This document shows positions 44,301-63,803 of a DNA stretch of 64,000 nucleotides, piece by piece. Each line of letters starts with the position of its first letter. Positions within the stretch are counted from its first letter, which is position 1. The stretch is from Klebsormidium nitens. Lineage: Eukaryota > Plantae > Klebsormidiophyceae. The stretch is from NCBI GenBank assembly GCA_000708835.1, contig DF236985.1, positions 1 through 64,000 of the forward strand, read 5' to 3'. Below the pieces are notes generated by a model. It was not told the origin of the DNA, did not search any database, and saw only the letters and a program-made list of their open reading frames with translations. Both the position numbers and the translations under genes were made by a program.

Positions 44301-47300
44301 GGGACTGAACGGAACGGGATCAGAGCCGGGCGGAACAGGCGCTGCCACGTTCTGGATCGGCCAGGTCGGTCAGCGCTTTAACCTGGATTGCGAGAGCGGT
44401 ACAGGAGAGTGACAAAGAACGCGGAACGTAGCGGGACAGGGACAGGAATTTGACCTGACTGGAAGGATGAACGGCCATGCTCTGGATTGCTTGATCGATC
44501 AAGAAGAGCTTCGAGCGTGATACCGGAACGGAGCGGAGCGGAGCCACTGGACAGGGCGGGAGTGAATGGAGTGAACTGAAACAACAGTGCTTGATAACCT
44601 GAGCCACAGGTCCAGAATTGCAGAACTCCGAAGAGCCCTCATTATTGGACGTTTGCAACTGGCAGCCCCAATCCTTGACGCTGATCCTCTACCCCTACTA
44701 TCAGAATAACCCCACAGAGTTTCCCAGGTGATGTTGCTCATGTTGACAATCAAACTTACCTTCTGCGAGCTAGCGGGCGGCACCCCCTCCTCGATCGTCA
44801 GGTGCTGCTTCAGTGCGAGCGCAAGCGCCTTTGCGCCCCCAATCTCCAAATTGCCCCCCATCGCGTTTTGGCTCGCGGCGGGGGCTTGCTCCGACACTTC
44901 GGCGGTATCCGTTACCGATTGCTGGTCGATGACCTGGGTGTTGATGGCCTCGTAAGCGCGGTCGGCCATGAGTTGGAACTCGGCTTTCTGTTCCGGGGCG
45001 AGGATATAGCGCAGCTGCGAGCCGTCGATCGTGTCGATGGAGATCGGGTTGGCCTCGAGCGAGTCGGAGATGCCCTGGAAATTGGGGACTCTTAAGTTAA
45101 GAAAGATACGTGCAGATGCAAATCCAACAAAGCGAGGAAATCGCAGGGATCAACTAGGCCTGAAAAGGATGTTGAAGAAGTCCCTGAAGCTCGGCCGTTC
45201 CAATGCTGAAACTGGAAATCAACAGAACTGTTTCAAAACTTTTTGACTCCTTCAAACTCTCGGTTGCCTCATTCTGCAATGCTGGAACCATTGGACTCTC
45301 AGTTTGACGCATGCCCAGCGGAACACACAAGATTTTGGGTTCCAACCTTCTATCCTGGTAGCCTTTTGAAGGCCTGAATGCAAAGGGATGTGCATTTGAA
45401 AGAGCCAAGTGCCACAATGAAAGGCAGGCAGAGGTAGAGGTTTCCAAACATAAGATTCTCTTCCGAAGGAGAGCCGAGCCTCTTAGTGCTTATTTATGTT
45501 ATGTCTGGGGTTGTCTTTAGTTTCGCTCTATGACCAGACGGGACAAGTACATGCTTGCGTCGGGTACTCACAATCGCTCTGTACGAAGCAGAGTGCTAAG
45601 CTGACGCAACCAACAATTTTCCAACCGTATTTTGCTCCATCACGGCAAAAATTCGAAGGACCCACATCAGCAGACCTAGAATAAAATTGTTATCAAGCCC
45701 TTCAGTTTGAGAGAAGCTGCAATAACATGATCTTGTCACTTACCAAAAGGATGTCCCGAGTGACCACCCCAAAAGTATCTCTGTCTACCTGGCCAGACCG
45801 CTTGCTCGCATCCAGGTACTGACCAGTGATTTCCTTGTAAATCTGTGGCAGGGAACAACGAGCTTTTCTACATTTTTTTCGCTTTGTTCAGGAGTTCGAC
45901 AGTTCAGATTGAGCCGGAGGACTTGTGAAGAGCGCTGGAGAAAGCGCTGTGCTGCTGGAGACTGCTCAACTGCAAATCTACTCCTTTAAAGAGAAAAAGG
46001 TTGTTGAGTTGAGTTACGGTCAGCCGTGCCCTTGGGACCTTCCCCTTGTGCATGAGTCAATGGTGCTGTTCTGACGGCGACTATCGCATGGGCCTAATTT
46101 GAAAAGCATGGTTTAGCATGGTCAAGCATGGTGAAGCTTGATTAAGTATGGTTTTGTTCAGGCGCCAAATCGTGATCGCCAACTCGTAGTACTGATTTGA
46201 CAGGTCGTCACACCACTGAATGCCTTTTTCCAACTGCCTGCAACCAATCTACAACCAATCTACAGAAAAATGCGGGGCACAAACACTCGTAAGCCGAAGT
46301 TAGCCCTTCAGCAGTGGTGCAAGCTACTCTGCAACTCAGGATAACAAAGAGGAGCACATTGCATACGGCACGAGTATCCATTCCCCAATGATGTGACCAT
46401 TCTCAAGCCTGTCAAATTTCCACTAAGCCCGTATGTCCTGCAAAAGCCAATCTTGCATCGAACAGGCTCTGCGAAGAATATTCAGTGTCCCGACCAAAGT
46501 GTCTCGTGCGTGTGTGACTCATTCTACCCTGCTGATTCCCCATCATTTTCTGAACAGGGTCAAGGAGACTGAAAAAGATTTGGGAGAAGAGTATATAAAA
46601 ACTTCAAGGCACGAGAAGTTTAGTATATGATTGATCTGGGCACAGGTGGATCACTCCGAATCCTTCTTCCAAAACCGAAATCTTGCCGCGACATGATTCT
46701 AATACTGTCCGTGTTCTGGTATGAAAATCACAAAAGTAAGTTAGGGCAGCATTGCCCACACCATCCTTTCAGCCAGCCTTTGCATGCACGCCATTTGCAC
46801 TGTTGTAATGTTTCAAATTCATTTTCAGCTAGGGACAAGAATCCTGGCTGCAATGCGGGCATCCTTTTCACATGCTGAACAAAAGCAAAAGCTCTGATAC
46901 ATTGGTCTATTGCAGATGCGCAACATCCTTAATGTGAAAAAGATGGTCGGATAGTAGAAGAACAGCAGACTTTGAGGGGCAGATTCTCAGGGAGGACAAC
47001 GCAGATCATTTTTGCCATTGCAATGTGGTAGCGTCAATCCGCGCGAAGGAGACAGTCAGCAATGTGCGATGGCTGTTGTTCCCCGCTTGACCTTATGTGC
47101 AATATGATTCAAATAGTAAAAACCCACCTGATCCGTGTCTGCAGAAGAGCCCATCGGCGGCAGACCCAGCAATGACCCCCACTCTGCAATCGCCGGCTGC
47201 AATTCCTCAGCGGTGAGGCTGCCTGTCCCAGATCCGTTGAGTTTCTTGAACTTGGAGTCTATGTACTGACTGAATTTGGAGGGATCCCCGGTGAGAGCCT

Positions 47301-47349
47301 TGAGGCGGCGCCCATCAAACTTGTCGGCAGCATCAGTGCAAGCGGCCAT
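41391..47349 (-). CDS. Plant-type degenerate EF-hand repeat protein; exons approx. 47349-47128, 45829-45731, 45078-44760, 43893-43732, 43130-42951, 41756-41391
   Basis: Three internal repeats of the pattern DGxxLxxL..F....F..L..(GTGSL)..L...GLPP, e.g. DGRRLKALTGDPSKFSQYIDSKFKKLNGSGTGSLTAEELQPAIAEWGSLLGLPP and GEKIKPLMGDKEGFSRAVHQIF..AGLPPLG. Phase-0 GT-AG joins are consistent. Confidence 0.75.
42390..43005. repeat. Five ~140-bp tandem units copying the 3' end of exon 5 plus its donor site
   Basis: accttttcgtttgcgcc(t/a/c)agcggcggcagcccggcca at ~42947 (real junction), ~42800, ~42652, ~42512 and partially at ~42390. Confidence 0.85.
43380..43785. repeat. Degenerate tandem copies of the exon-4 donor junction
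   Basis: accttctcg(g/a)tgtgcgc(g/a)acggt at ~43729 (real) and ~43611; ctccgacgccctcgt at ~43521 and ~43641; a decayed copy at ~43383. Confidence 0.7.
43860..44530. repeat. Five to six ~140-150-bp tandem units copying the exon-4 acceptor plus the first ~60 bp of the exon
   Basis: gctctggatcgc..gtcga(t/c)cagcgcttcgacctg..gcgagaccgga at ~43860 (real), 43998, 44150, 44255 (partial), 44349 and 44479. Confidence 0.85.
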
Positions 47350-47932
47350 TGTGGCAGCATTCAACGGCAAACACAGCAAACGCGCGCGATCGCAGCGACC
47401 CACAACCCTCCAGAAAAGTGCTTTGCAGGCGAAGAATCAGCTAAGATGTTTCAAGGGAGGTGTTTGATGATCATTTCAGAAAGAAAGGCGGATCCAGTAA
47501 GGTTACTGTTTGCATCAAGAGGATACAGGATGCGAATGTGGATGGGGGCACTCATCATGCATTACGTGTAGGGGCGCTCCCTTCGCCGCTTCACGGAGGA
47601 GTCAGGGAGCTGGCTTGAATTTTCTGTAGGAAAGCACATGGCCTGGAAAATGAGGAGGGAGAATCTCCAGTTCCATTCGGTGCTGCTGCCACTTGGCGCT
47701 GGGCGCCCTACATTTTGCCAAGTGTTCAGCAAGATACATATGCTGCTTCTCAAACCTTTATGCCGGATCGCACACCGTCAGATTATTTTCAATCGACGGC
47801 AGTCAATCGACCCAGCGCACAGCTGCGGCGGCCGCTCTAACCCAGAACAATGGCGGCCGCGACAGGCGTGCCCAGTGCCGACAATGGAAGGCCGGCCAGT
47901 CGGACGCACTAGGCACATAGGCAGTTTGAAGC

Positions 47933-48130
47933 CTACGAACAGTAAGTGCATTCTTGGTCCTTGCCGAAGTGAATTTGCGAACCCGGCATGAAGGTTGTGA
48001 CTAAGAACTTGAGGAAGCGGTTGCGTAAACGGAGACAATTGACAATATACTGACCGTCGTGACGACGGTAATGGCTTGCCTCTTCTTTGATAAAATAGAC
48101 AGTGACATCGAAGATTTCATGTGTATCCAT
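47933..48130 (-). CDS. Hypothetical 65-aa ORF at the 3' end of the element
   Basis: ATG-initiated ORF co-oriented with the element genes, ending in CTYC; its stop lies within the candidate terminal hairpin. No recognisable family. Confidence 0.25.
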   Translation of the reverse strand: MDTHEIFDVTVYFIKEEASHYRRHDGQYIVNCLRLRNRFLKFLVTTFMPGSQIHFGKDQECTYCS

Positions 48131-48268
48131 ACTTGGAATCCAACATGATACGTTAGAGCATAGTGTGAATGTGCATAGAAGTACAGTTTCAATTTACATG
48201 TCTGACTGCTTCATACTCGTGCTGTTCGCAATGATTTGAAGGGATTCTGAACAGTATGTTGATTGTAA

Positions 48269-48796
48269 TTATGTTTGAAACCTTTCTATCTTGATTCCAT
48301 TGTTCCCTCGAACTATTGTTCCATATTTACTATCACGTATTTCAGAGATCCCGAAAATCAGTTCGTTCATTTTGTCGCTCATGTGCGCCTCTACAAGTTG
48401 TTCTTTGGTTACGCTGAACGTACATATTGCTGACTGGTAGCATGAAAAGACAGCTTGTTCTAAGGTCACTTGTCGAAAAGGAATCCCAAAGACTCGGCAC
48501 ACCTCCTGACTGGGTAAGACGTCGTCTTTCGCTGCTTTTACTAGTTTCTCTGCACCTATGGATACCAGGAAACGTACCTGTCTATATCTGTCTGCACTAC
48601 CAGGAGACGGCGAATGCGTTGTCGCCGCCACGACGTTACAATCAGACTTGTGCTGACGCCAGTGCTTTTTTTGATGTTCTTGACCACAGTAGTAGACCAA
48701 TTTACAGCTGCCGCAGCGAAGTTCAGACCGAGCACCACAAATTTGACAGTTATATGACTCAGGAACGACGCATTTTTCACGGGATTGTTGCTCCAT
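48269..48796 (-). CDS. MYND zinc-finger protein (175 aa), element cargo
   Basis: CQICGARSELRCGSCKLVYYCGQEHQKKHWRQHKSDC fits the MYND pattern CxxC..CxxC..YYC..HQ..HW..HK..C. Starts 112 bp after the RPA-like stop. Confidence 0.8.
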   Translation of the reverse strand: MEQQSREKCVVPESYNCQICGARSELRCGSCKLVYYCGQEHQKKHWRQHKSDCNVVAATTHSPSPGSADRYRQVRFLVSIGAEKLVKAAKDDVLPSQEVCRVFGIPFRQVTLEQAVFSCYQSAICTFSVTKEQLVEAHMSDKMNELIFGISEIRDSKYGTIVRGNNGIKIERFQT

Positions 48797-48907
48797 GCCG
48801 TTTTCGTCCTACGACTTCGACTTGCAATTAGATTTTTCTCGCCTGCCTATGTACACAGATTTTCTGGTCCGCTTATATCAGCTTGCAGTTACTCGACTTG
48901 ATGAAGT

Positions 48908-51900
48908 TTACTCTGCCTTGTACTTCTTCGAAAAGAATCCTTTCTCTGGCGGCAGCTCGATGCCCACAATATTGGCTTGGTATTGGCTGAATTGCGTGTT
49001 CGGATTCTCACGGATGCGCAGGTGCATCGCGAAGCGCTTGTTCTTCAGACGGGTGTTAAGGTTGTCCAGCTGTTCGTTTGGAGGTTTGATGCTGAAGCTC
49101 GTCAGGTGCGTGCCGGTGACGACGACGAAGTCGTTTGACCAGATTTTGACGGCCAGGACGTCCGCTGTACAAGGAGACGGTAGAAGTATAAGTTGCCGCT
49201 GAAGTCGGTTACCTCCGGCGAAGCAGTATCGACTACAGTCTTAGCTGAATTCAATGACTTCGATGAATCGGTTGCTAATGTCGATACTACTGTTGTAAGT
49301 GGTGTCTAATCTGTCATGCTGCGCGTAAGACAATTCTACTTTTATCTTCAAGCTCAGTCAACTTCGACCGTAATTTTCAATTCTGAGAAAATTTGGACTG
49401 TTGATCGTGTATTCAGAATCCTGCGATTGCATGATGATTCTATCGATCCAGGTAGGTTGAATCGGCCTACCTGCAGGGGCTGCTGTCTTGCACGGAACTG
49501 TGCGCGCGCACACGTGTAGGTGACGTAGCCGCGCGCGCATATGCTCGTTCTAAAAAAGTTTGAAGTCAAGTAAACAAAAAGAAATTCGACTACTCACGTC
49601 CTGCATCCACCCGGATGTCCACTGACACGGTGACTTCTACGCACGCGTCCGTCAGCGGTCCCGGCTGACATCCCTGCTCGCAGAAGAGCTGGCGCGTGAC
49701 CGGGTTTCTGCTTGCAGCACCGCTGCACTCGTAGCAGCCGTACGCGATGGAGTCGACTTTCGTGAAGTTGATGAACGTCGCAAGCACCGTCGCTGCAGTC
49801 CACTTGTTGCCGGCCAGAGATTGGACGACTCGAGACCACGGCATGATTCTGTCTTCGTTGACGATTCGGTAGGTCAGACCGATAGCAGCCACAGCAGCTG
49901 CTGACGCGTCACTCTTGCAGATGACAGTGCTGCGAGAAGAGACATCATAACAGTTATCTGCTGTTTTACATCACGGTTGCTCGGAAGCTTAAAACGCAGA
50001 CATCTCAAAGTTCGTCAATCAATGTCCGCCAGACGGAAATGTGAAACCTGTTTTAAATCTAAGCTGATCTCGACTTCGATAGTGAACGGATATTGTTCGT
50101 GTTACAGTCAGACTTCAAAGAACTTATGTTGAGCGTTATCTCAGTTTGCAATTCCTAGCAACTTCTGATTCAGCTACATCAGATAACCACAATAAGAGTT
50201 TTACGGGATAGAAAGCTTTTGCAGTTCTGCATATGTGGTAAACGTAAATCATCTGGTGAAGTCGTAAAAGTCTGAAAGAAGAAAAAAACGACGAAAAATC
50301 AGAAAAAATGTAAAAGACTCGATGCTATTAGACGAAGACTGACACGTGGCACGTGCTGATTGGCTGAACCGGAGAGTACCATCACAGAATGGTGCTGTCG
50401 TCTCGGCTTGTCATATTCAAAGACCGAGATGCCCGTACAGTGGGCGCCCATTCGCGTGCTATCATTGGCTTACCGGTTGACCAAAATAAGTGTGCTGTTC
50501 TTTTACGGATCCGAATTCTTATACGGAAGAAAGAAATTCACGAATCTTTCAAGAAATCTGCCTGCGAATATGTAGCTGCGGTTAACGCACAGTAAGTTGC
50601 GTGCAGAAATCTTACTTTCGCGTGCTCGAACAGCCCTGGTCTTCATCGTACTGTACTCCGCTGATGACCACGACGTCAGCACGGACCTTCAGCTGTTTGA
50701 GTTCAGGTAGGTGCGCCATGTCGCCCCAGATTGCGATGCTACCCATGATGCCGCTTTTGTCCTTTATGACAATTTTGACGACCTCGCGGTCACCTCTTGA
50801 CGTCATCGGTTTGCACACACGGCTCTTGTAGACCAGTAGACCTTCGATTTTGTGAACCTGTATTGGAGTAAATTCATGTGATGAGTAAGCAGGCGTTCGA
50901 AGTCTCTGATTTCCAACTGTATGTATTTTCTGCAGATGGATCTTACGACTGATCACGTACGCAACTTGCTGTTACAGAATCCTCTAGTTAATAACCATAT
51001 TCGGTTGACCGAACTTTTATCAGTTATCTTTTAATAGAACGCAATTCATGGAGAGACCAATCAGACCTGATCGACTGCAACGATTTCCTGCATGTACTAT
51101 GGCGCGGAGGACTTCGAAGATTGTGACAGAGAATCTTTGATTCCTACGGATCGATCTGAATACAAGCCTTCAAGCCTGGCACATGAGTGAGCGTCCTGTT
51201 TCAAAAACTTTGTTAACCTGGATTGCAAAGTTATGTTTATTTTGCAAACTTCTGGCTGGTGGTCATTATTATCAAAGTACGAGATGACATGCAAGCACAT
51301 CCTACGAATGAATTTGCGTCGGATTTGACTTACGCCGCCAGGTTGGAGAGCGTCGAAGCTGACTGGAGTTTCCACGATCGATACGATCTCCTCTTCAGAC
51401 TTCATGATCATGGTGCGTCCTTCCGTCACCTTCAGGGAAGTTGGATGATCCGTCAGGGAATACCTGTAAGGGAGAGAACATAGAACATTTGTCATAGTCG
51501 AACATAAGCGCAGGCTTGTAGTCGTGCATGCACGAGCCAGCTTGGTTTGCTGACTTGCAGATTCGAGGGATTCGACGCTAAGCAGCCGCCACGATGTTGA
51601 AATTCGTCAAATTCGCATATAGAAAGTTACTGACTACGACGGCTGGTGAAAGATGCGCGACACTACAGAAGATTATGACGTTGAATAAGACGGGAGATTG
51701 TGCTAACTCAGAGGTGGTTGGACGTTACTGACCTGACAATGCCATGACTTCCAAATGAAGCCGGCGTTCTAATTTATCGCTTAAACGCAAGAAACGCTTC
51801 GTTTGTGACTCAGACAGCATTGTCAAAAGCCCAGTCTGAGTTGCATACCAAGCAATCAAACATAGCCAGACAGAAGATTCAGCACACGTCAGAAGCAGAG

Positions 51901-52213
51901 AACAAGACGCTTACCTGCATGAAGCGACCGTCGGACGGTACAGGAGTATGGTGCTTTCTTTTGCGCATTTGTCGCTCACATACTCCACAGAATGCTTGTC
52001 CCTGCTTGTGGCTTCCACCGTGATTCTATTCCCTTCTTTGTCTTGGAAGACTGCAGCTGTAGTGAACAGGTGTCCAAATGGCAGCTCGCGCACTTTGGGC
52101 TTGTTGTTTTGCGTGGGACTATCTAGGTCAACTATTTTCCCATGCACTTGGAAGAAATCGGAGTCGACTGGGAAGTTTGCGATCTGACTCACGGTGACTG
52201 TGGGCACCTCCAT
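48908..52213 (-). CDS. RPA70-like ssDNA-binding protein (OB-A, OB-B, Zn-containing OB-C), 419 aa; exons 52213-51915, 51463-51334, 50857-50616, 49929-49598, 49164-48908
   Basis: Five GT-AG exons total 1260 nt with consistent phases. OB-fold signatures: VHGKIVD..AAVFQDKEGNRITV, YSLTDHPTSLKV, KIVIKDKSGIMGSIAIWGD, and a C-terminal AYGCYEC..FCEQGC zinc finger followed by VKIWSNDF..VTG..RFAMHLRI. Confidence 0.8.
50345..50363 (-). promoter_or_regulatory. CCAAT-N9-CCACG motif (ERSE consensus), in RPA-like intron 3
   Basis: Minus strand CCAAT cagcacgtg CCACG; 19/21 identical to the copy at 53667-53687. Function untested. Confidence 0.45.
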
Positions 52214-53511
52214 TGCTGCAGCCGCTTGTGCGCACATGCTTAAAGATGGGAGCTTGCTTCTGTGGAGACGAGCTACGCGTGCGCAACAGAAGGACGCTTC
52301 TGCTGGGGAAAGGAATTGAATTGAGCCGTCTCGCGAAATGATCAGAATTAGAAGAGTTCGAGAGTGGACTTGAAGAACGTGGGCGAACGGATGACAGCTT
52401 GGAAATAGTAGACAGAAAAAATTCAGTCAACGAAAGCGTTCAGAATAGGCAGAGTTATAGATTGCAGAAGAGTCAGCAGTAGTAAAACTCGTCGTGTAAG
52501 ACAGCGAACTTCGAACGAACGGTAGAAGAAGCCGATGTCATGCGCACGTGTCGTAGAATTCGAGACCGGAAGGGCAATAGTCGAAGCTCGAGCGTCAAGA
52601 GAATAGTTCTGGTTAAGTCTGACGACGAAAATGGAAGCAGCTGACGTCGAAGAAATCCACGTACTCACACCGTCAGCAGCAAATGCGCCTCCTCAGCGTG
52701 TGAATCAAAACGCTGTAGTGACAGAGTCATAAGCCATGCGACATGCATGCTCGTGAGCATGCACACGACGACGACTTCAACAACCGTAAGCACTAGAAAG
52801 ACGAAATCGCTGGTTACCAGAAACAGACGAAGGGTTTCGATGTCGTCATACGTGACACGTGCGTACGGCAGTAAAGTTGTACGGCTTCGCGCGCGTACGA
52901 GTGAGAGACAGACTGTGCAGAAGAAAATTCCACCTACCGGTACTTACTTCGCTGTATTCACCTTCTCAGCTGGATCTGATGCAACCGTTGGCTTCTTGAT
53001 CCCTCGTTGTCCACGTTCGCCGAATGCAGCTTTCTTCGCAGCTTTTTAAACCTGTAGGCGGGACAAATCGTCAGCAATTGCACGATACCGAGAAAACAGC
53101 AAGCCATAAGAATCAGGAAAACAGTTCGATCCCTGCTGAAACATTTTCCAGTGTCATCAAATTCTGGGTACGTAGCTAAAGTTTAATGCTTGTGTAAAAC
53201 TTGCGACGCACAGAGAAGGAAATCAAATAAGCGTGAATGACCTTGCAGAGAACGGAACGTAGCTCCGCTTGCCTAGAGCAAAGTCATTTTACACCTGGAG
53301 AAGACAGATAAGAATCCGACAGAATTCTTCACAGCGCGTGCAATAAAAAGATGGATAGGAGATAAAACTGAAGAGGTTCTTTACTACGCGTGCAAAAACT
53401 GGTCAGATTAGAAGAGGTAGGGAGAAAAACCCTGAAGAAATCCTTCACTGTGCACGTAGACGTTGATCAAAGTAGGAAGGAAAGACAACAAACAATAAGG
53501 GAATCCCTCAC

Positions 53512-53656
53512 CGCACGCGTCGGCTGTTTTAATCGGCAATATGAATCGCTCCTTCTCCATCACCAAGTGCAGCTCGTCCAAGAAGTCCGCCGACGAGTCC
53601 GGCTGGGACATCACCCTGAAGCAGACCTCCATTGCGCCACCTGCCATCCCCGACAT
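53512..53656 (-). other. Exon-like coding segment between RepHel and the RPA-like gene (MSGMAGGAMEVCFRVMSQPDSSADFLDELHLVMEKERFILPIKTADAC)
   Basis: GC3-rich codons ending in a good donor (G|gtgagg) at 53512; no downstream exon resolved. Confidence 0.3.
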
Positions 53657-53668
53657 GCTACGGCGCCA

Positions 53669-53687
53669 CGTGGCGCTTGCTGATTGG
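53669..53687 (-). promoter_or_regulatory. CCAAT-N9-CCACG motif (ERSE consensus) upstream of the accessory genes
   Basis: Minus strand CCAAT cagcaagcg CCACG, overlapping a G-box (CACGTG). Confidence 0.45.
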
Positions 53688-54019
53688 ACCGTAGTTATCC
53701 AGCTCAACGGAAAAGTAAGCGAAATCGACGAGCATGCTGCAGACTTAGCGGATAACGTAGAGACCTCAAAAACTTACGAGCGGCAGAGTAGCAGAAATTG
53801 GGTTAGGATAAGGATTAGTTTTAAAACTTAGGTGGGTTTAAGGGCATGCGTAATGGCTTGAACGGTTTTCGTTTTCGTGGATCGACTTGTAGTGGTCAGA
53901 GAAAGATGGCAGGCAGCGGAAAGCAAAGAAGAGATTCTTGAGTTTTCAAACAAAGGAAGAAAATCCTACCGCAGACTTTGAAGCAAACATTAGCGAAGAC
54001 GAACGAAACAATATGCTAC

Positions 54020-57000
54020 TTATCGACAGCTGACTGAATGAAGCGCTATATGGAGCGGACTGTGGTCGCTCCAATACGCCTCTAGATTCCGGACTGCAGC
54101 TGTACTTGCTAAGGAAGATGACACCCAGACAGCGTCAAGCATGCTCCCCTGATTAGTGGTCGGCAGCGAATTCAGTAGGCTGGCTCCGAATGAATGCATT
54201 ATGCTAATGAGTTTTTGAGCAGTATTAGATTTCTGCAACAGGTCGATATTAAAGTCACCAGCGCAAATGAAAGATGGCGTTGCTCCCGGTGCTCGTCGGA
54301 ATATATCGTCGAGGAAACGTCTTAATGTTTCTAAGAAGTTGTCGACAAGAAAGTCAGACGGTGATCTGTAGACTGCAATGAGGTAAAAGTCAGGACACGG
54401 CCGGCCCCGGATGTGAATGCAAAGTACCTGCGAGTGACAATCAGATAGCGCGGAGTGAAACGTAGCCGTTAATGCTTTGTCCTGCTTCGATAAGTAGATC
54501 AGAACGTTATCAAATCCGCTTCTTTCGCTGGCGTTTGCTTCAGCCCGATAGACTTCGAAATTTGAGCGGGACAACGTTGATAAAGACCATGACGGTGAAG
54601 TTCTTGTTTCTGTGCACACGATGATGTGACTGCGATTGAAATTAGGATCTGCAAAGAGGTCGGATTCATGTAAGCGGAAAGAACGCACGTTATGTAAAAT
54701 TAGGTGGAGTTCTCGATCACATCCAGGACTGAAAGGTACCTGCGGAATACAGGGTACAACGCACGCTTTTTGGCGAAGACGAGCCATTTCCATTATCACC
54801 TTATGGCTCACCGTAATCTCATCGAAAGCAGCATCTAGAATGAAGACATCTTTCAAGCTGGGAAATCGACTAAGGCCGACATAATGACGACCGGCGTCAA
54901 TATGCCGCTTCGAGGCACCGCGAAAATCGACTGCGCCTTTTCGTACTGTCATGCCTTGTGTGTGATAGAAAGTTCCGGCAGTTGCCGGTCGTAGCGGAAA
55001 CTGCATCCGCAATATGGTACTGTCAATTCGCCGGCTCGCCTGAAACTTACGCGATATGCGGAACACTGGCGTCCATGTTGGATTAACAGAAGGACACAGA
55101 CGATATAGATTTACGTGTTGTTTGCGAGTATGCCGTCCGACTCGTTCGTCAACGAATTCTATCCAGACCGCATGGGGATCGGCGCCCCCGACATCATGAA
55201 AACGTCTGATATAGCCGGTCGCTCCATTGTATAAGCCGTCTGGGATGTCAATGTTACAAGTGACTTCAACGAGAAGTCCGACTTTGAGAAGTAGAGTTGC
55301 ATATAAAGTCGCCGTTTCAGAATCTTGCATTGTGATCGCTTTCGTCAGAAAGTATTGACGGTCTCGAGAAGAAATGCTGCAAGACAACACTTCATCTCTT
55401 GCTCTAAGAGAAAATTCGGGCCCTCCTGTAAGGCGTAATACAAGTGAATTGTGCATGTCCCTTTTTTTGTGCGTTGCAAAAATGTGTTTGTCGAATGCGG
55501 AATAATCCGCCGGCAGGTGCAGCGTATCAACTACCCTTGTTTGAAATAGGGCTAAATCGTCAGCGGTGTGAGCGCCAACACGCAAACGATTGAGCGCTTC
55601 CGCGAAGTTAAGACATTCTTTCTGACGCATGATATCCACGAGTTCGTACATACGTACGTTTTCTTCCCACAAATTGCTGACAATCACACCTTGCTTACGA
55701 ACACCCTCGAAAACATATCCGTCCCACAACGGTTTCAGTTGAAAAAGGTCACCTCCGAAAATAACCGGCAAGCCGCCAAAAGGCTCAGCAGACTCGAAGA
55801 TCTCCTGCAATCTATAGTTTATTATTTGAAGGAGTTTAGCCCCAGTCATTGAAATTTCGTCGATCACAATGCCCCGTAAGTCTGCGTAGTTGTCTCTTAA
55901 AGCAGCTTTTTTTTCGCCACTTATCTGAATATACGTTTCTACTTTCGCATAAAGGGGTATTTTGAAGGCGGAATGAATAGTAACTCCATCAATGTTGAAG
56001 CCAGCGCTCCCCGTAAATGCGGTCAGTAGAAGTTTTAAAGACGTTGGTTGCAATCCCAGAGTTCCGCTGAACGTACGAATTACAAGCTGGGTAAGGCATC
56101 GAATCACCAAACTTTTTCCAGTCCCTGCACCTCCGGTTAAGAATTCCACGAGTTGCCAATCACCTTGAAATTTTAAGCGGTGAATAACGTGATTGATGTA
56201 TGCTCGTTGTGGTAATGTCAATATTCGCATCTGACTGCGGAAATCTTGGTCATCCAACAGAACCTGCGAATGCGGCAGTTTCTCCTCAGCTGATGCATCC
56301 GCCGACGGGTGAAGTTCTGGGGGAACTGTAAATTCTGACGGCACAGCGCAATCTGCTGAAGCGCTGTCTGAAATATGCACTGCAGCAGTGTCGTCTAATT
56401 CGTCGAATAATTCGACATCCATAGCAGCCATAGCTTCTGCGTATTGCTCAACATCCTCCCAGGCAATACATGAGTTGTAATTGTATGATGCGACTACAGC
56501 TTCAATCGAGTCTTTATTGGCATCGTACCTGGTTTCAAAATCCGTGTACGATGCAAGCAAAATTCGGTCGATTTGCGCGTTCAAGGTCGCCAGATCCTCG
56601 CCATCGAACTGCCAAGGCAGAAACAGGAGAAGTTGTTCTCGGAAGAACAACTCGGGATCTGAATTTTTTCTGTATCCAACATATCGGATAATCTTGGCTT
56701 TACTGCGCTTTCGATATCTGCGCATACCCGTAGAATTTTGTGTAGAATCAAGCTCATCGGCTACTGTAAGATCAGCAGTTTCTGCACTCGGAACAGTATC
56801 GTCATTTATTTCTTCGTCGGCAACTGGAGCTGTTGACGCAGGCTCATACCAAGCAGCGAAGTCGGCTAGTGTCAAAGTTTCCGTACCCTGTAAAATCGGA
56901 TTCCGTAAGCGCATGGCGTATTTGTCGACAATATTGGTATACACGCACTCAGTTGAATCCTCCGGGAGCAGACGTAAAGCATGGTCATTTTTGACTAGAA

Positions 57001-60000
57001 AAGTGCGATCCTCGACGGGTCCAGTTGGAATGAATATGTGATCACGGGAGCTACGTCTGTACGGTATACCGATGCAACCGTACACAGCTTCTTGCGCGGA
57101 AACTTCTTGCCCTTTTAACAGCGTCATTCCCACGTGTCTTATGGCCCTTCGAAGTTCCATATTTCCTCGCCGTGCATCGGCGTATGCTTGATCTAATAGT
57201 TTGCTCATTTTGTAGTCGGTCTTCATCATATACGAACTGATATAGTTGGCTGCTGCGTATGCCTCCAGTACGAACTGAAAGTCCATGTTAGTTCCATCTA
57301 AAAGTTTGAGGAGTTTTGGATTATAGTTGTTGATGTAAACTTCGCAAGGACGTCGTTTCAAGAAAACGACTGGTTTGACTAGCTTTGAGCGTAATCCGAG
57401 CACATATTCCGAAGGCGTCAAAGAAAGGCGACTATAAAATTCAAGAGTATCCAGTTCACGTACACCTGGATCTTTATCTTCCAGATCTTTCAGACCTGCA
57501 GCAATCCGCCGATGATATTCGGCGCATTCCAATTTTTTAGATTCTGAAAGACCTTCCGGCAGAGGATGAAGAATCATAGTTTCGTGCAAAGGGGGCCGCG
57601 GAAAGCTGAAACGGCAGACCCTCTTATTGCTAGGACTGCGACGTTTTAAACAGTAACCACGACTGTGGTGATGGAATTGGCCCGCTAAATTAGCAGGCGC
57701 AGCCGCGGTCGACGAACACGTAACGTGCGCATCTATAAACGCGACGACTGTAGAGTCGTCGTCAATGCCAAATTTTGGCGCATCTGCTACGTAAAAGGCG
57801 CAGTGCGTATGCGGCGTACCCCGCTGCTGGAATTCATCCCTCCAAAAGAAATCTGTGACGTGTCCGATCAACGACGAGTATTTACAGATTGCATGCACCA
57901 AACGGGACCTTCGATTATCATAGCATCGAGAAACTGTAACGGGATCATTTCTAATCAAACGAACTTTATCGATCCACGGGAATTCAAGCGCAGCCGCTTC
58001 TGATACCATAATTCCCGTTGCCAAATAATGCAGATTCCGTATTAAAGCTCCCCAGTGAGTTTCAGCCATCGTGAAAGTACCAAAAAATTGAAAGGGACCG
58101 AGCTGCCTTATTGTTGCGAAGGCTTCTTGTTTGCCCTGACGGTTGTATTCAGGACTGCCACGTAGCGTTTTGAAATCGCGATATCCTACGTTTTGAGCCA
58201 TAAGCGAGGACTTGATTTCAGAATTACGTAGCTCACCGACCGTCGGAAAAGCAAGGCTGGGTAACTTTTTCTTACGTAGATGAACCCACGATTGACTGGC
58301 AACCATAGCAGCCTGCAGTTTCCGTAATTTGAAGAAGATATTACTAGTATGATACGCAAAACGACGATCTACATTAGTTAGTTCAAACTTGCATATTTTG
58401 CTGTAACTCAGTTGACTAGTAGGTCTAGCACAACCGTTGAACAAGGAAGGGAAAGCCTTCTCCTCTGCATATGGATCTTGTAACATACCCAACGGTGTTT
58501 GTCCTTCGCTTGGAGCAACGTTGACACCGAAATTGTGGAACGAAACAAACGACGGAACATCTTGAAGCATAGTCTCTTCTGGCGGTAATCGACCGGTGTC
58601 CTCATCTCCGGAATCCGACTCCGAAGATGACGATGACGACACGTCATCCAGTGTTATTACTCCACCCTCAATGCCTAGCTGATCACGAAACAAGAAAGAC
58701 TCTACGTGATGCGCATCAGTACGCAGATCCGCATCAGCTAGCCAGTCTGAACGTACAGATACACCTGCTTCTCGCCACAACGTTGGGCGCGACGTCAAAT
58801 CAACTACGGCGTCTCGTAATTTTGCTGGGCGCACGTTTTCTGCCGCCCTATAACATGCTTTATTGCGAAGTTTATATTTGATGGCGACTGCAATTGTTCC
58901 CTCCGAGTCTACAAACCTCGGCAATGCAAGTTGTATCTTGCTGAGATCGGCGGGCACGTTGACAACCATGCCTTTTAAAGCCAACTGTCCTAACCTTCTC
59001 GGCCCACCAGCAGCAGAAGGAGGCAATCCACGCATTTTCATAAACGGCAAACGTAAAGCAAGTAGATCATTTTCCATACTGGTGAGCCCTTGCAGCGCCG
59101 GAGTCAGAGCCGGAAAATCCGGTTGACGAGTTGGCGCGCCTGGTGGGCAACGACGTTTCTTTACGTATCCAGCGCACGTAGAGCAGATCCATTCTTTGTT
59201 ATCTACAGAACATCGCCCAGACAACCAAGCAAGCGCTTCAGCATCAGTTAACCGACTCCTTAGCTTATCGTTAACCTCCCGCACAGAGTGCGAGAACCAA
59301 GAACGTCGACAAGAAGTGCAGACGAAGAGCGGACCCTCATTACTTGCCGCGCGAAATTCGCGGACGATCTCGTCAAGATCGTCGGTATCAGCATCATTCG
59401 TCGGGGACACATTCTCCGACGTCATAGCTGATATGCTTCTGTCGAGCTCCATTTTAACAGCCAGAGACAATTGTAGAGAATCAGAGACGGGCAGATTAAG
59501 AGCATGTCTTCGAGAAACTCGACGAGCCACGTAATCATATGCTCGAGCGGCTTCCGTAGCAGTGTCGTAATAGCCGAGGTCGTAGCTTTTACATAGTACA
59601 TTAATTCGAGCTCGGAACCGTATTCGATCGTGATACCGTGTTTCATAAACGCCGAAGAATTGCGGGTGAGAAGATTCATTTGGAGCCGCAGACGCCTGAG
59701 TCGCAGACTCTTCTCTGGGAGCACTACTGCGTTGATTGAGCTTACCTCTGAGCAGCATCAAGCATTCATCAGCATAAGCACGCTCCGCTGCATCCACACC
59801 AGCTCCGTCGGGAAAGTTGAGCGGCCTCGGGTACGCGCCGTCCGCCACGAGAGCTTGAATAACGTAGTCGTAAGTCCTGGCGGCCTGCTCTTCAGACTCG
59901 AAGGCACCAACGTGATACTGCCTGCGGCTAAACTGACACTTAATCTCGAACGGCCGTTGCAGGCGCTTCGACCTATGAACTCCCCTATATTGACCAGCAC

Positions 60001-60613
60001 CACTTTTTACAGCAGCCGACTTTAGACGAAACTGACAAGAACTACAGGTCTTAGATCGCTGTAGATTCGGCAATTGGCACTGCGGGCAGACATTCTCACG
60101 ATGATGCAGCTGAAACCTATGCTTACAGTTTCCACATACGTGAGCTTGGCTAAATACCCGTTGAGTGCACCCTGGGCATTCTTTCAAACGCCTCTTTCCA
60201 CTACCGCCGCAACTATGACAGCTAAGAGCGCTGGGAAGTACTTTGCTGGTACAATGCATCTTCCAGGGGCAGAGTATCATGCTGAGCCCGTTTGAACCAT
60301 CCTGGCTATAATCAGCGGTCTCAGCGGGCATATCCCGGTCGTCAGAGCTTACAGATCCTCCAGAACTGTCCTGCGCATATCGCCGTACAAGCACTACGTA
60401 CTTCATCTCCCATGCTTGTACACCTTTCATCATTGCTCCTTCCAAAGAAGTCGGCGTCATGACTACAATTGAAAAACCAGCTTCGTCTCCTTCCCAGCTT
60501 GTAACTTTGCCCACACAATGCTGAAAGCGATCATCAAGAGGGGCTGCTCGAACATGAACACCCAGCAGAACCTGCGGCCCGTACCTATCCACGTCGTCAG
60601 CCGGAGAAGCCAT
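54020..60613 (-). CDS. RepHel transposase, 2197 aa, intronless: zinc ribbons - AP2 - AP2 - Cys cluster - HUH Rep - PIF1 helicase - APE/EEP endonuclease
   Basis: ATG at 60613. Rep: EFQQRGTPHTH (HUH, ~57803-57835) and YISSYMMK (YxxxY). Helicase: LTGGAGTGKS, IVIDEISM, GGDLFQLKP, QFPLRPA, HTQGMT, YVGLSR. APE/EEP: HNVRS, VCTET, AVYRSP, GDFNID, SMLDAVWV, SDHSPL. AP2-like: YRGVHR..GAFESEEQAARTYD..LNFP and FFGVYE..GYYDTATEAARAYD..LNLP. Confidence 0.95.
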   Translation of the reverse strand: MASPADDVDRYGPQVLLGVHVRAAPLDDRFQHCVGKVTSWEGDEAGFSIVVMTPTSLEGAMMKGVQAWEMKYVVLVRRYAQDSSGGSVSSDDRDMPAETADYSQDGSNGLSMILCPWKMHCTSKVLPSALSCHSCGGSGKRRLKECPGCTQRVFSQAHVCGNCKHRFQLHHRENVCPQCQLPNLQRSKTCSSCQFRLKSAAVKSGAGQYRGVHRSKRLQRPFEIKCQFSRRQYHVGAFESEEQAARTYDYVIQALVADGAYPRPLNFPDGAGVDAAERAYADECLMLLRGKLNQRSSAPREESATQASAAPNESSHPQFFGVYETRYHDRIRFRARINVLCKSYDLGYYDTATEAARAYDYVARRVSRRHALNLPVSDSLQLSLAVKMELDRSISAMTSENVSPTNDADTDDLDEIVREFRAASNEGPLFVCTSCRRSWFSHSVREVNDKLRSRLTDAEALAWLSGRCSVDNKEWICSTCAGYVKKRRCPPGAPTRQPDFPALTPALQGLTSMENDLLALRLPFMKMRGLPPSAAGGPRRLGQLALKGMVVNVPADLSKIQLALPRFVDSEGTIAVAIKYKLRNKACYRAAENVRPAKLRDAVVDLTSRPTLWREAGVSVRSDWLADADLRTDAHHVESFLFRDQLGIEGGVITLDDVSSSSSSESDSGDEDTGRLPPEETMLQDVPSFVSFHNFGVNVAPSEGQTPLGMLQDPYAEEKAFPSLFNGCARPTSQLSYSKICKFELTNVDRRFAYHTSNIFFKLRKLQAAMVASQSWVHLRKKKLPSLAFPTVGELRNSEIKSSLMAQNVGYRDFKTLRGSPEYNRQGKQEAFATIRQLGPFQFFGTFTMAETHWGALIRNLHYLATGIMVSEAAALEFPWIDKVRLIRNDPVTVSRCYDNRRSRLVHAICKYSSLIGHVTDFFWRDEFQQRGTPHTHCAFYVADAPKFGIDDDSTVVAFIDAHVTCSSTAAAPANLAGQFHHHSRGYCLKRRSPSNKRVCRFSFPRPPLHETMILHPLPEGLSESKKLECAEYHRRIAAGLKDLEDKDPGVRELDTLEFYSRLSLTPSEYVLGLRSKLVKPVVFLKRRPCEVYINNYNPKLLKLLDGTNMDFQFVLEAYAAANYISSYMMKTDYKMSKLLDQAYADARRGNMELRRAIRHVGMTLLKGQEVSAQEAVYGCIGIPYRRSSRDHIFIPTGPVEDRTFLVKNDHALRLLPEDSTECVYTNIVDKYAMRLRNPILQGTETLTLADFAAWYEPASTAPVADEEINDDTVPSAETADLTVADELDSTQNSTGMRRYRKRSKAKIIRYVGYRKNSDPELFFREQLLLFLPWQFDGEDLATLNAQIDRILLASYTDFETRYDANKDSIEAVVASYNYNSCIAWEDVEQYAEAMAAMDVELFDELDDTAAVHISDSASADCAVPSEFTVPPELHPSADASAEEKLPHSQVLLDDQDFRSQMRILTLPQRAYINHVIHRLKFQGDWQLVEFLTGGAGTGKSLVIRCLTQLVIRTFSGTLGLQPTSLKLLLTAFTGSAGFNIDGVTIHSAFKIPLYAKVETYIQISGEKKAALRDNYADLRGIVIDEISMTGAKLLQIINYRLQEIFESAEPFGGLPVIFGGDLFQLKPLWDGYVFEGVRKQGVIVSNLWEENVRMYELVDIMRQKECLNFAEALNRLRVGAHTADDLALFQTRVVDTLHLPADYSAFDKHIFATHKKRDMHNSLVLRLTGGPEFSLRARDEVLSCSISSRDRQYFLTKAITMQDSETATLYATLLLKVGLLVEVTCNIDIPDGLYNGATGYIRRFHDVGGADPHAVWIEFVDERVGRHTRKQHVNLYRLCPSVNPTWTPVFRISRKFQASRRIDSTILRMQFPLRPATAGTFYHTQGMTVRKGAVDFRGASKRHIDAGRHYVGLSRFPSLKDVFILDAAFDEITVSHKVIMEMARLRQKACVVPCIPQVPFSPGCDRELHLILHNVRSFRLHESDLFADPNFNRSHIIVCTETRTSPSWSLSTLSRSNFEVYRAEANASERSGFDNVLIYLSKQDKALTATFHSALSDCHSQVLCIHIRGRPCPDFYLIAVYRSPSDFLVDNFLETLRRFLDDIFRRAPGATPSFICAGDFNIDLLQKSNTAQKLISIMHSFGASLLNSLPTTNQGSMLDAVWVSSSLASTAAVRNLEAYWSDHSPLHIALHSVSCR

Positions 60614-60939
60614 TATTGCGGTCAGCAGTATGCTGCAGCAAACAGAATTCAGCAAAGCAGAAGACACAGATTAAGACGCAGCCTGCATGCACAGAGAAAG
60701 ACTTGCAGCACTCGTACGAAGTTGAAAGCCAGCACGACCTGACTGTCATGCGAAGCAGCTCGATGCGAGGGATAAACAGAGCATTGACAATCGAGGCCGC
60801 CTGGATCGGCCGCGTTAAAGCGAACGACTGTGACAATAAAGACCAACGATCGGGTACGCACCGTTAGTACTAATAAGGCGACATACTATACAGAATGGCT
60901 AGGTACGCACCGCCGCAGTCGAAATCACAGGCACGCGGG

Positions 60940-60995
60940 GTAGCATGCACAGTATGCATGCTACGCAACAGTATGACCTATCGGTACGATACCGA
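60940..60995. other. Stem-loops upstream of RepHel
   Basis: Perfect 10-bp stem gtagcatgca-cagta-tgcatgctac (60940-60964), and tcggta-cga-taccga (60981-60995), the latter repeated at ~61085. Confidence 0.6.
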
Positions 60996-62040
60996 CTCAC
61001 GCAAAAGCACGAAGCTACGCAGATATATCACTGATATCAGCGGTACGTACCCGATCAGCTCATTTACTGCGACAAATCCTCGATCCGGTACGATACCGAG
61101 ACTCACAGAAGCCCGAGGCGATTTCCTATACGAGGTAGGTACGTACCAAGTAGTGTAGGCTAGCGGCTAGCCTGGCTAGGTACGTAGATAGTCGGTACGC
61201 AGTAAACAGTACGCAATGACCCAGATTGAGCCCCGTTCGACGGCGACTTGCGTCAGATTGAGCCGAGTCTAAAATGTTCGATTCGAAAACCGCAATCCGC
61301 ACCGCAACGCGGCACCCAGTCGAGGCGGGGGGTTGTCGCCTTATTTGGGCAAATTTTTATGCCGTACCGTACGTTTTATCGTCGAACTCAGGCAAGCGAA
61401 GTCGGCACAAACAGGTCGATCGCCGGGTCCGCGCCGCGGCGTCGTACAGTAGCAAAAAACCCCATTCCCATGGCTGCCCTCTTCCAAAGGAAGAGGCAAG
61501 CCAATATACTGACACGCGTTTGGCAACCGCAAAGAGTGGGCCACGTTAAACCTGATTCAGCTGTCAGTAAGAGCAACTTTTGATGCCAGTGCATTCATCA
61601 CTGGGCAGCTAATAGCAAGTCGCATTTCGCATTCACAGGACTCGTCGAGATGGCTATCAACACAACGGAGCAAGTTTATGACCGACTCACCGTACTTCGA
61701 ATTCATAAGCTCTGAATTTCCCGGCAAGCCTAAAAGATCACCGGGTTGCGGGGCAAAGCCCCATCAGCAAAATATGATGCATACAAATGTTCCGGTGATC
61801 ATATGTATCGTGCAGAGAAAGCATTGCGAATGTGCATACAATCTCTGTCTTCTTGATGTTACTTGCGATCTTAAAAGAACATGCAATGATTAGCTATTGT
61901 AAGGCAACAAGTGGAGGGCATGCGTATTCATCGTCGGAACGCTGGAAAAGGTCGTCGAAGGAGAAGAGGCGTCCCGTACAGCGTCGAACAGAAGCACGCA
62001 AAGGAGGTCACACGACTGGCGGCCTCAGTGGATGTTCATG

Positions 62041-63803
62041 CTACTCCCGTTCTCGGCAGAATGGCTTGTGCTCTGGCCAGGCGTTGACTTGACATTCCTT
62101 CGAGCAATCTGCAAACGAAAGGTCTGATAAGTAGCCCATTCAACGTACAAGTCGCGGGGGCGTGCCATTAAGAGGGCCATCAACTTGATCAACCCAACTC
62201 GTATATTATGCCTCTACGTATCAAGTGAAGCAGCACGTGGTACTGCTCTAGGCCTCGAAAGCAAATCTCTCGCGACCCTTTTAGTCCACCTCAGCTTTCC
62301 AAGCAGGCCAAGCCATGGATCGCTTTGAAAAGACGGAAGGCTCTGCAGAACACACACTTCTTTCAACAGACTAGCTGAGAAGCCAAGCCAAGATCAACTC
62401 AAAGCGGAGCTCCGCCGCCGTACTCACAGCGCATCTCGCGACACCGTCCGCAGGTCCGGAACTTCAGCCCCGGCCCCTCCTTCTTGTCGCAGGCGCGCGC
62501 GCTCTCCAGGCCGCGGTTGCACAGAGCCTCGACCCTCTTCGGGAGCTCTCCGATCGCCCCAGCCGCCGCGAGCGTGGCCGCCGTCCGTTTGTGGCCGTAC
62601 TGCTTCGCGACGTCCAGGGGCGTCAGGCCGTTGACAGGTGGCGGCGTCGGGTTGGCCCCCTTCGCGAGCAGCATAGCCACGGCCTGCAGATATTGAGACG
62701 AGATTTGAGCGAGAACTAGTGTCGGGAATTGCCGAGGACGTGTATTTTGGCATAGTGTGCGACTGGTTTGAGGCAAGCGACTGGAAGGGAAGGAAAAGCA
62801 AGGTTTCTCTACTTCCTGTACGAAAGGTCCCTTTTTGGAAGCTTCAGGTCGAGCTGGCACATCCATTTCGCGATCGAAAAAGGCCAGGTTTTTGACAGGG
62901 CTGTGTCACTATCTCGACGAAATCTCGGCCAGGATTCCCCATCTTGAGCTTAATATAACGGTGACTTCAAACAGGTAATAAGGATGACGGCTATCGAGAT
63001 TGTGTTTGAGCAGATATTTGGCCCTAAACTATGCGCTGAGGAAGCCAACGTGGGGCCGCAAAATGCCCAGACTCCAAAGAACCTTCGGCTCCGAACTAGC
63101 CCCGGCTCACCTCCACTTGGCCCAGCTCCGCAGCCTTGAACAGCGCGGTGGCGCCGTCCCGGTGCTGGCTCTCGTCCGCGCGCGCACCGCTCTCGATCAG
63201 CTGGTCGACGACAGCGGCCCACCCGTACTGGGCTGCGATCGTCAGCGGGCTGCGGCCGCGGTTGTCCGGCTTGTTGACCGCCTTCGCGAGGCCCTGCTGA
63301 CCGCCGCTCTCCCGAATGCGCGCGAGCGCGAGCGCGCACAGCTCCGAGCTGCCGACTTGCGCGATGCTGAGAGAAGGAGAGACATGGACAATTAGAATTG
63401 GCTTCTCCTTTCTGAAAACCAGATGGGTCGTGTATTGGACAGAGGAACAGGTTAGGCAGTCAGACCGTTTCGAAAAGGAGACAGGTCAAAAACTGAAGCT
63501 GTTTTACGTGGCTTTGAGCTGGGCCCTACAACCGAACACGAACTCGCCATTAAGTAGAAGCAATACATTTATAGAGCAGTCTGCGGAGATGTCTCGACAA
63601 CGGCTTCCAAAATCTTTCAAGTCAATAATTCATATTTGTTGTTGCGTCCATGAAGGGGTTCAGACGATACTCACACATGGAGAGCATTCAGCCCGTCTTT
63701 CGTCGGGTAGTCCGCGCGCGCACCGCTCTGGAGCAAAAAGCTGGCCAACTGCAGCCTGCCTTGCAGGAGGGCGTGCATCAGGGCGGTGCAGCCGTCAGCG
63801 TCC
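62041..63803 (-). CDS. Ankyrin-repeat + C-terminal MYND finger protein, 3' part (5' exons beyond the window)
   Basis: Exons encode DADGCTALMHALLQG, DNRGRSPLTIAAQYG, DGATALFKAAELG and VNGLTPLDVAKQYG (ankyrin repeats). Splicing gives CGRCREMRYCSKECQVNAWPEHKPFC (MYND); stop at 62041. Confidence 0.85.

Follow-up and report, generated by a model that had tools for sequence, protein, structure and literature searches.

Helentrons that encode Rep, helicase and APE together with RPA are known from a mite and from Nematostella, and Helentrons carry RPA and OTU open reading frames (ORFs) (Thomas et al. 2014, PMC4067079). In HELIANO (Li et al. 2024, PMC11417382), both clades of Helitron-like elements (HLEs) have RPA among their listed domains; one of these clades is HLE2, for which DUF6570 is a marker. 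In HLE2, RPA is reported upstream of RepHel and in subgroup a only, and the endonuclease (EN) in subgroup b. Added domains are common in HLEs. The same work found 20, among them B3, a domain of plant transcription factors, and STPR is also known as a captured domain. Here, we focused on one locus in the draft genome of the alga Klebsormidium nitens (GCA_000708835.1, PMC12472361), within positions 1 to 64,000 of contig DF236985.1. This whole 64-kb stretch is referred to as the window. The locus is very probably an autonomous Helentron, i.e., a member of the HLE2 clade of Helitron-like rolling-circle transposons. Its main parts, in window coordinates, are as follows (aa, amino acids; nt, nucleotides):

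~48044–61507 (−): the element, 13.46 kb, with ends set by comparison with two Klebsormidium nitens paralogs
60819–61461 (−): 5′ non-coding region, presumed promoter, with paralog-conserved blocks at 61271–61461
54020–60613 (−): transposase ORF, 2197 aa, intronless, with a conserved ATG start
48908–52237 (−): predicted RPA70/MEIOB-like single-stranded DNA-binding gene, 427 aa in five coding exons
48269–48796 (−): MYND zinc-finger ORF, 175 aa, which shares the last exon with the end of the RPA ORF and lies 112 nt past its stop

The first-pass annotation of this DNA had described an intact, multi-gene element of the Helitron superfamily with all genes in one orientation. This is borne out by the three co-oriented minus-strand ORFs, by the uninterrupted transposase frame, by Pfam domains and by the RNA that supports the genes. 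The extent first proposed, 47909–61281, came close (within ~230 bp on either side), and comparison with the paralogs instead places the ends at ~48044 and 61507. Both paralogs represent the whole unit and belong to the same assembly (L003, with protein P0122, on DF238146.1; L004, with P0121, on DF237391.1). The sequence and RNA data show the domain content, intact catalytic motifs, Helentron-type termini set by comparison with the paralogs, splicing and transcription.

The Rep signature, DUF6570, the fusion to APE, the ends and the nearest relatives together assign the element to the Helentrons (HLE2). All 120 matches listed for RepHel are Helentron-like proteins with DUF6570 and/or APE. Outside the family, the closest proteins belong to animal Helentrons that carry APE and an OTU or Herpes_teg_N protease, at 35–36% identity over 1051 aa; the protease is missing from the Klebsormidium element. 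With the RPA-bearing Helentrons of Nematostella and of the mite Metaseiulus occidentalis (Helentron-Mo-1A), the element shares the combination of Rep, PIF1 helicase and APE in one ORF and a separate RPA70-like gene. It also shares subterminal inverted repeats (subTIRs) of 12–15 bp, a 3′ palindrome, T-rich ends and the Rep signature FWR...RG(S/T)PHxH. However, no AP2, zinc-ribbon or MYND domain is described for those elements in PMC4067079. The mite RPA ORF is intronless and meets CDD thresholds for the DNA-binding domains (DBDs) A and B, whereas that of the element has five exons and is too diverged for Pfam.

Likeness to the HLE2 clade of PMC11417382 extends to DUF6570, to an EN of the Exo_endo_phos type as in subgroup b, and to the stable capture of DNA-binding and protein-modifying domains. 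Unlike the HLE2 arrangement given there, in which RPA is upstream and apart from EN, the element has RPA downstream and together with EN. A multi-exon RPA70-like gene downstream of RepHel is also found in plant canonical Helitrons (HLE1) with RPA. These lack APE and DUF6570, and they have 5′ TC and 3′ CTRR ends and insert between A and T. None of these end features is present in the element, which has subTIRs and a 3′ palindrome instead.

The transposase and its AP2 module

The frame 54020–60667 (−) is uninterrupted, with a GTG at 60667. The MASPADD start conserved in the paralogs places the true start at the ATG at 60613 rather than at this GTG. From the N-terminus, the protein consists of a small beta-barrel-like domain, a double zinc ribbon, two AP2 domains, DUF6570, HUH Rep, PIF1 helicase and APE endonuclease. 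Pfam positions other than those of AP2 are given in numbering from the GTG at 60667:

aa 138–212 (GTG-based): double zinc ribbons, found by Pfam
59489–59989 (−), ~aa 208–257 and 332–382 of the 2197-aa protein: tandem AP2/ERF-type domains
aa 520–625 (GTG-based): DUF6570 (PF20209), Pfam E 1e-6, 29.7 bits against a cut-off of 24.3
aa 761–956 (GTG-based): Helitron_like_N, Pfam E 9e-18
aa 1486–1690 (GTG-based): PIF1, Pfam E 4e-25
aa 2095–2205 (GTG-based): Exo_endo_phos_2 (APE), Pfam E 2e-9, above the cut-off

A Rep of the HUH type with two Tyr and a PIF1-type helicase are combined in this one protein, with APE fused at the C-terminus. An AP2-AP2-Rep-PIF1-APE protein free of visible stops and frameshifts had been reported at first pass, and it was recovered here with its domains recognised by Pfam, AP2 being borderline. 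In an alignment with animal Helentron proteins, the catalytic motifs are all intact: RG(T)PHTH, YISSYMMK (YxxxY), GGAGTGKS (Walker A), IDEISM (Walker B) and, in APE, the glutamate, GDFN and SDH. The Helentron-type Rep signature FWR...RG(T/S)PHxH is found as FFWRDEFQQRGTPHTH; the diagnostic F/Y-x-R ahead of motif 2 is thus FWR in the element. The variable position of RGxPHxH is T in the element, which is conservative relative to the S of Helentrons and differs from the L of Helitrons. The N-terminal domain (window 60389–60613, aa 1–75) is conserved across all family members at 27–65% identity and was modelled as a small five-stranded beta barrel with a modest predicted local distance difference test score (pLDDT) of 64. 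No significant fold match was found for this model (best E 0.29), with only weak ones to Tudor, PWWP and other SH3-like barrels.

The AP2 region was matched by Pfam AP2 (PF00847) in two stretches (E 6e-8, 33.2 bits against a gathering cut-off of 33.3). Its best sequence match among solved structures is the double-AP2 factor WRI1, collinear over both repeats (E 1.6e-4), followed by ERF096. The signature F.GV...Y.ARI...LG.F...EAA.AYD...NFP is kept in two distant relatives (L001 and L002, 46–48% identical), and comparison of the region with the paralogs gave a nonsynonymous difference (pN) of 0.28–0.31 against a synonymous difference (pS) of 0.60–0.66. Judged from these sequences, every family member found has the tandem AP2 module, on which purifying selection acts. 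Its apparent source is a double-AP2 transcription factor of a streptophyte. Plant double-AP2 factors (WRI1/ANT/AP2 subfamily) likewise have two AP2 domains in tandem. Their linker is short and conserved, whereas that of the element is ~75 aa long; the first repeat is degenerate in the element's distant relatives, and the module sits within a transposase.

Ends of the element

The following structures lie at the two ends:

61503–61507 (about ±5 bp) (−): 5′ terminus, ATATT/TATT directly before the subTIR
61490–61502 (−): 5′ subTIR, 13 bp, GGCTTGCCTCTTC in element orientation, within a hairpin at 61462–61502
48044–48085 (−): 3′ end, composed of the subTIR (48073–48085), 4 nt, the palindrome, ~10 nt and TT at ~48044
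48054–48068 (−): 3′ palindrome CCGTCG-TCA-CGACGG, followed ~10 nt on by ...TATATT
48043–48054 and 61502–61513: 12-bp direct repeat, CAATATACTGAC on the plus strand and GTCAGTATATTG in element orientation

The homology between the window and L004 starts exactly at ATATTGGCTTGCC (ATATTGG, 5 nt outside the subTIR) and the sequence beyond is unrelated; blastn reaches 61507. TATTGG also precedes the 5′ structure of the distant relative L001. The 5′ subTIR is nested in a hairpin with 61462–61475 (DNA fold −11.9 kcal/mol, z −3.4), and both motif and hairpin occur in L004. With 48073–48085 it forms an exact inverted pair of 13-mers. At the 3′ end, L003 has the same order of GAGGCAAGCC, 4 nt, CCGTCG..GACGG and 8 nt, after which the scaffold stops. 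The subTIRs of the element lie 1–5 nt from the 5′ end and ~28–40 nt from the 3′ end, with the palindrome ~10 nt from the 3′ end. In Helentrons, subTIRs of 12–15 bp lie 2–4 nt from the 5′ end and 38–60 bp from the 3′ end, and the palindrome 8–35 bp from the 3′ end (PMC4067079). By this layout, the predicted end structure is typical of Helentrons.

Helentron insertion is expected between T and T, with no target-site duplication; both ends of the element lie in a ...TATATT|G context. The 12-bp direct repeat has only two matches in the 64 kb, each abutting a terminal structure, so that it flanks or overlaps the ends. Three origins are conceivable: a target-site duplication, a 3′–5′ junction that was carried over, or a target similar to the joined ends. 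A break in the DNA contigs at 47829/47855 was considered as the 3′ end and rejected, as the subTIR and palindrome in common with L003 lie at 48054–48085. A GC-rich stretch (47800–47884) lies where the source sample's contigs break, ~190 bp beyond the element; it holds two GCGGCCGC palindromes and is possibly a short dispersed repeat.

The 5′ non-coding region is 72–79% identical to those of L003 and L004, and diverged paralog contigs accumulate over it (depth 84 vs 23). One conserved block, TTCGACGATAAAACGTAC, persists in L001, a relative of 46% identity. The region also contains 11 GGTACG motifs in 516 bp (60853–61368), where their frequency in the remainder of the window would predict ~0.25, and a 34-nt unit of this cluster occurs twice, at 60982 and 61086. 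As the same region of L003 and L004 holds only one to two exact GGTACG, the array is largely specific to the window copy.

No further pieces of the family were found elsewhere within the 64-kb window. The flanking host ORFs are unrelated to the element. On the right lies an ankyrin-repeat fragment (62399–62866, −) and on the left a weak EF-hand-like ORF (47056–47403, −) that is transcribed up to ~47660.

The RPA-like gene, the MYND ORF and their transcripts

RNA contigs from three runs of different studies, placed on 47300–53299 for the downstream genes, gave the following structure through their joints:

53053–53512 (−): leader intron between the transposase stop and the RPA ORF; a loose contig end at 53052 resumes at 53513
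52300–52947 (−): alternative second leader intron, joint 52299>52948 in two runs
52237–51912 (−): RPA-like exon 1
51460–51332 (−): RPA-like exon 2
50855–50616 (−): RPA-like exon 3
49929–49598 (−): RPA-like exon 4
49164–48911, plus stop (−): RPA-like exon 5

Four minus-strand GT..AG introns thus lie in the RPA-like gene, in addition to the two in the leader. Each of the four is supported by RNA contigs, with joints seen in three runs, and the spliced exons form a continuous 427-aa ORF. The five-exon structure is repeated in L003 at 64–78% identity, and dN/dS against the paralogs is ~0.12–0.15. The gene lies downstream of the transposase in L002, L003, L004, L006 and L007; in L002, L006 and L007 it follows the end of APE, the L001 contig is too short to reach it, and L005 consists of RPA exons only. 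As first proposed, it belongs to the element: wherever a relative's contig extends far enough, the gene is found behind the transposase.

What this gene encodes was addressed with domain tests on single window exons and on the full-length paralog P0122. On the window exons, the best Pfam match is REPA_OB_2 (E 0.049, 14 bits against a cut-off of 27), in one exon only, and for P0122 no Pfam match lies above threshold. Sequence searches of the PDB with P0122 and with per-domain profiles found no RPA chain, the best match being a crenarchaeal single-stranded DNA-binding protein (SSB) at E 0.5. Language-model similarity of P0122 to MEIOB/RPA1 clusters is 0.96, with ~210 of 256 features in common, and that of its C-terminal 188 aa to Rep_fac-A_C is 0.94. 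A CxxC-x13-CxxxC motif lies in the third part of the protein, where RPA70 DBD-C has its zinc ribbon. An AlphaFold model of P0122 from an eight-row alignment is confident for the first OB fold only (pLDDT 81–87); its fragment rows were in part misaligned by MAFFT, which may have harmed the model of the second domain. The best matches of the first OB fold are bacterial SSBs, Teb1 OB-A and RPA70 DBD-A, at middling Z scores of 5–6. In an exhaustive HMMER search of 1.84 billion representatives with this fold, just four relatives were credible, each of them a member of the Klebsormidium-type element family; a fifth match, P0125, was rejected as an unrelated repetitive protein. The RPA-like gene is thus highly diverged, also from the RPA genes of other Helitron-like elements. 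By the language-model, motif and fold evidence, the second gene is probably RPA-like; by curated sequence criteria, it is not. Of the "three-OB-fold RPA70-like" protein of the first-pass annotation, the gene itself stands as a spliced ORF, and the label has weaker evidence, with only the first OB fold confidently modelled.

The MYND ORF matches Pfam zf-MYND (PF01753; E 4e-11, 43.1 bits against a cut-off of 22.7) and contains the C4-C2HC pattern C-x2-C-x7-C-x2-C-x5-C-x3-H-x7-H-x3-C. A search by shared 5-residue words, which distant relatives may escape, found no homologue of the whole protein. It is covered by the same RNA contigs as the RPA-like gene and lies within the element termini, as had been proposed. 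In the window copy, ~820 nt separate the RPA stop from the 3′ subTIR and include the MYND ORF, versus ~330 nt without such an ORF in L003. As MYND is absent from L003, it is a later capture by the window copy or its subfamily and not a family-defining gene. It had been suggested that other copies lacking both RPA and MYND would mark these genes as host neighbours. RPA is kept in the relatives. MYND lies inside the termini and is missing in L003; by this test it is not a host neighbour, and it does not define the family either. In each of the three runs, the RNA contigs end at 48279–48312, 8–40 nt short of the MYND stop codon (48269–48271), which reflects either fading coverage or polyadenylation very near or inside the end of the ORF.

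RNA contigs begin at 60765 and 60818 and cover the transposase ORF without joints. The lengths of two contigs, 8418 nt and 7411 nt, fit exactly to a start at 60765/60818, the unbroken transposase ORF, the 53053–53512 intron and the RPA exons. Through spliced introns, RNA contigs link the RPA and MYND ORFs with that of the transposase. The three ORFs thus either share a transcript or sit on transcripts that overlap, and the spliced joints show that the signal is RNA and not carried-over DNA. Expression, one of the checks proposed at first pass, is thus established: the element is transcribed and regularly spliced in RNA runs of several studies.

The first-pass annotation had suggested a possible new Helitron lineage, since RPA and APE together, with AP2 and MYND in addition, matched no subgroup it could name. 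Its premise, that RPA is typical of plant Helitrons and APE of Helentrons and that the pair fits no known subgroup, fails, as Helentrons with both are published (PMC4067079) and RPA is listed in HLE2 (PMC11417382); the pairing therefore defines no new lineage. A lineage apart from Helitron, Helitron2 and Helentron would, on that reading, be defined by AP2, RPA, APE and MYND together. In its favour, the AP2-bearing N-terminal 400 aa matched no long protein in a collection of 5.8 billion sequences (by shared 5-residue words, again with distant relatives liable to escape), the credible relatives of the RPA-like protein all come from its own family, and RPA and EN are enriched in separate HLE2 subgroups (PMC11417382). 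Searchable papers, a scope outside which Repbase and Dfam fall, do not link Helentrons or Helitrons to AP2 or MYND, and neither domain appears in the main text of the HELIANO paper (PMC11417382; its supplementary tables were outside the scope). However, the Rep signature, DUF6570, C-terminal APE, subTIR/palindrome ends and best matches are all standard for Helentrons (HLE2), a gene missing from a paralog is not family-defining, and extra domains such as B3 are commonplace in HLEs. We consider a separate lineage very improbable and place the element in Helentron/HLE2. Within that group, the family-wide fusion of two AP2 domains to the transposase and the MYND capture, seen in the window copy and not in L003, may be new, and the RNA contigs in which splicing joins the transposase with the RPA and MYND ORFs also look new.

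Family history, selection and possible mechanism

The transposases of L003 and L004 are 61–70% identical in protein to the window copy and are followed by the RPA-like gene. More distant relatives come from short contigs of three other public samples. Among them, L001 and L002, with transposases of 46–48% identity, keep the AP2 region, and the APE tails of L006 and L007 are 32–34% identical to that of the window copy. Diverged paralog contigs also occur in the window's own DNA runs, where nearly all other matches are below 90%. Against L003 and L004, pN is 0.14–0.31 and pS 0.60–0.88, the latter saturated, in every coding part including the AP2 region and RPA. The family is thus an old one with maintained coding parts, and purifying selection acts on all coding parts with a comparator. 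The element and its flank have similar DNA word depths (23.2 and 22.4), as for a single copy, and at 95% likeness only the window copy's own contigs were placed on the 3′ half (47300–53299). The suggestion that the element is probably young is not borne out, given a single copy, paralogs at 61–70% identity and saturated synonymous sites.

Relative to the window protein, the transposase ORFs of L003 (~3776–3779) and L004 (~10884–10906) each shift frame once, by frameshift or assembly error. In the Klebsormidium nitens annotation, the L003 transposase has no gene call, and in P0121 part of the transposase is fused to RPA exon 1. The gene set appears to leave such elements largely uncalled or miscalled. 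Directly outside the 5′ end of L004, an annotated histone-fold gene lies on the opposite strand (L004 4607–5497, on DF237391.1), with its annotated start codon inside the 5′ hairpin. It was rejected as cargo, as it lies outside the homology start with the window, which has no histone gene at the matching position.

A single, expressed copy under selection could also be a domesticated or immobile Helentron-derived locus, with genes kept for a host function such as a DNA-binding regulator. A depth equal to that of the flanks, an intact window copy beside two paralogs with frame changes, steady expression with regular splicing, and strong purifying selection are all compatible with this. Against it, the catalytic residues of nuclease, helicase and APE are all kept, as are the terminal repeats and hairpins, which recur in paralogs elsewhere in the genome amid unrelated flanking sequence. 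Conservation of the non-coding 5′ blocks extends to relatives of 46% identity, as for cis-acting transposition sequences, and purifying selection among dispersed paralogs is the pattern of an active transposon family. Domestication thus seems very improbable, and an autonomous Helentron is preferred. As to current mobility, intactness and expression make it a candidate active element only.

Several observations weigh against this interpretation. The termini are predicted to within ±5–10 bp, and the 12-bp direct repeat seen at either end is unexpected for Helentrons, which are not known to make target-site duplications. As a single copy without a near-identical relative, the element could be old, merely still intact, or in the course of being co-opted. 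The AP2 score is 0.1 bit below the Pfam gathering score, and the RPA assignment falls below every curated sequence threshold, including those for membership of Pfam REPA_OB_2 and Rep_fac-A_C. Finally, the RNA contigs can neither prove a single continuous tri-cistronic molecule nor separate it from overlapping transcripts.

By analogy with known Helitron-like elements, the HUH Rep of this Helentron would nick the 5′ end beside the subterminal repeat and hairpin, and the PIF1 helicase would then peel off one strand. The element's own RPA-like protein would coat the freed strand, the 3′ palindrome would signal termination, and the APE domain would nick a T-rich target. The tandem AP2 domains would give the transposase sequence-specific binding to double-stranded DNA, which could act at its own ends or subterminal repeats or in target choice. 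The MYND protein would probably be a protein-interaction adaptor, and expression of the three ORFs uses a single transcription unit or several that overlap. More tentatively, the Helentron family may have permanently adopted a host double-AP2 module to read double-stranded DNA, along with a single spliced multi-ORF transcript for the transposase, the RPA-like protein and a MYND adaptor; we regard this as possible and rather doubtful. Candidate AP2 targets would then be the conserved 5′ blocks, the GGTACG array of the window copy, or promoter-type target sites. If true, AP2-guided rolling-circle transposition would have a first example here, and so would a eukaryotic DNA transposon with polycistronic expression.

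Helitron-like elements rank among the major shufflers of genes, and how their transposases find ends and targets is poorly understood. Members that have diverged as far as 46% protein identity still have the AP2 pair in the transposase, which makes it a tractable entry point to the recognition of targets or ends. The presence of MYND in one copy and its absence from a paralog provide a dated example of gene capture. Endonuclease-bearing Helentrons with RPA are now extended to a streptophyte alga close to land-plant ancestry, and this model charophyte holds an intact, expressed candidate active element.

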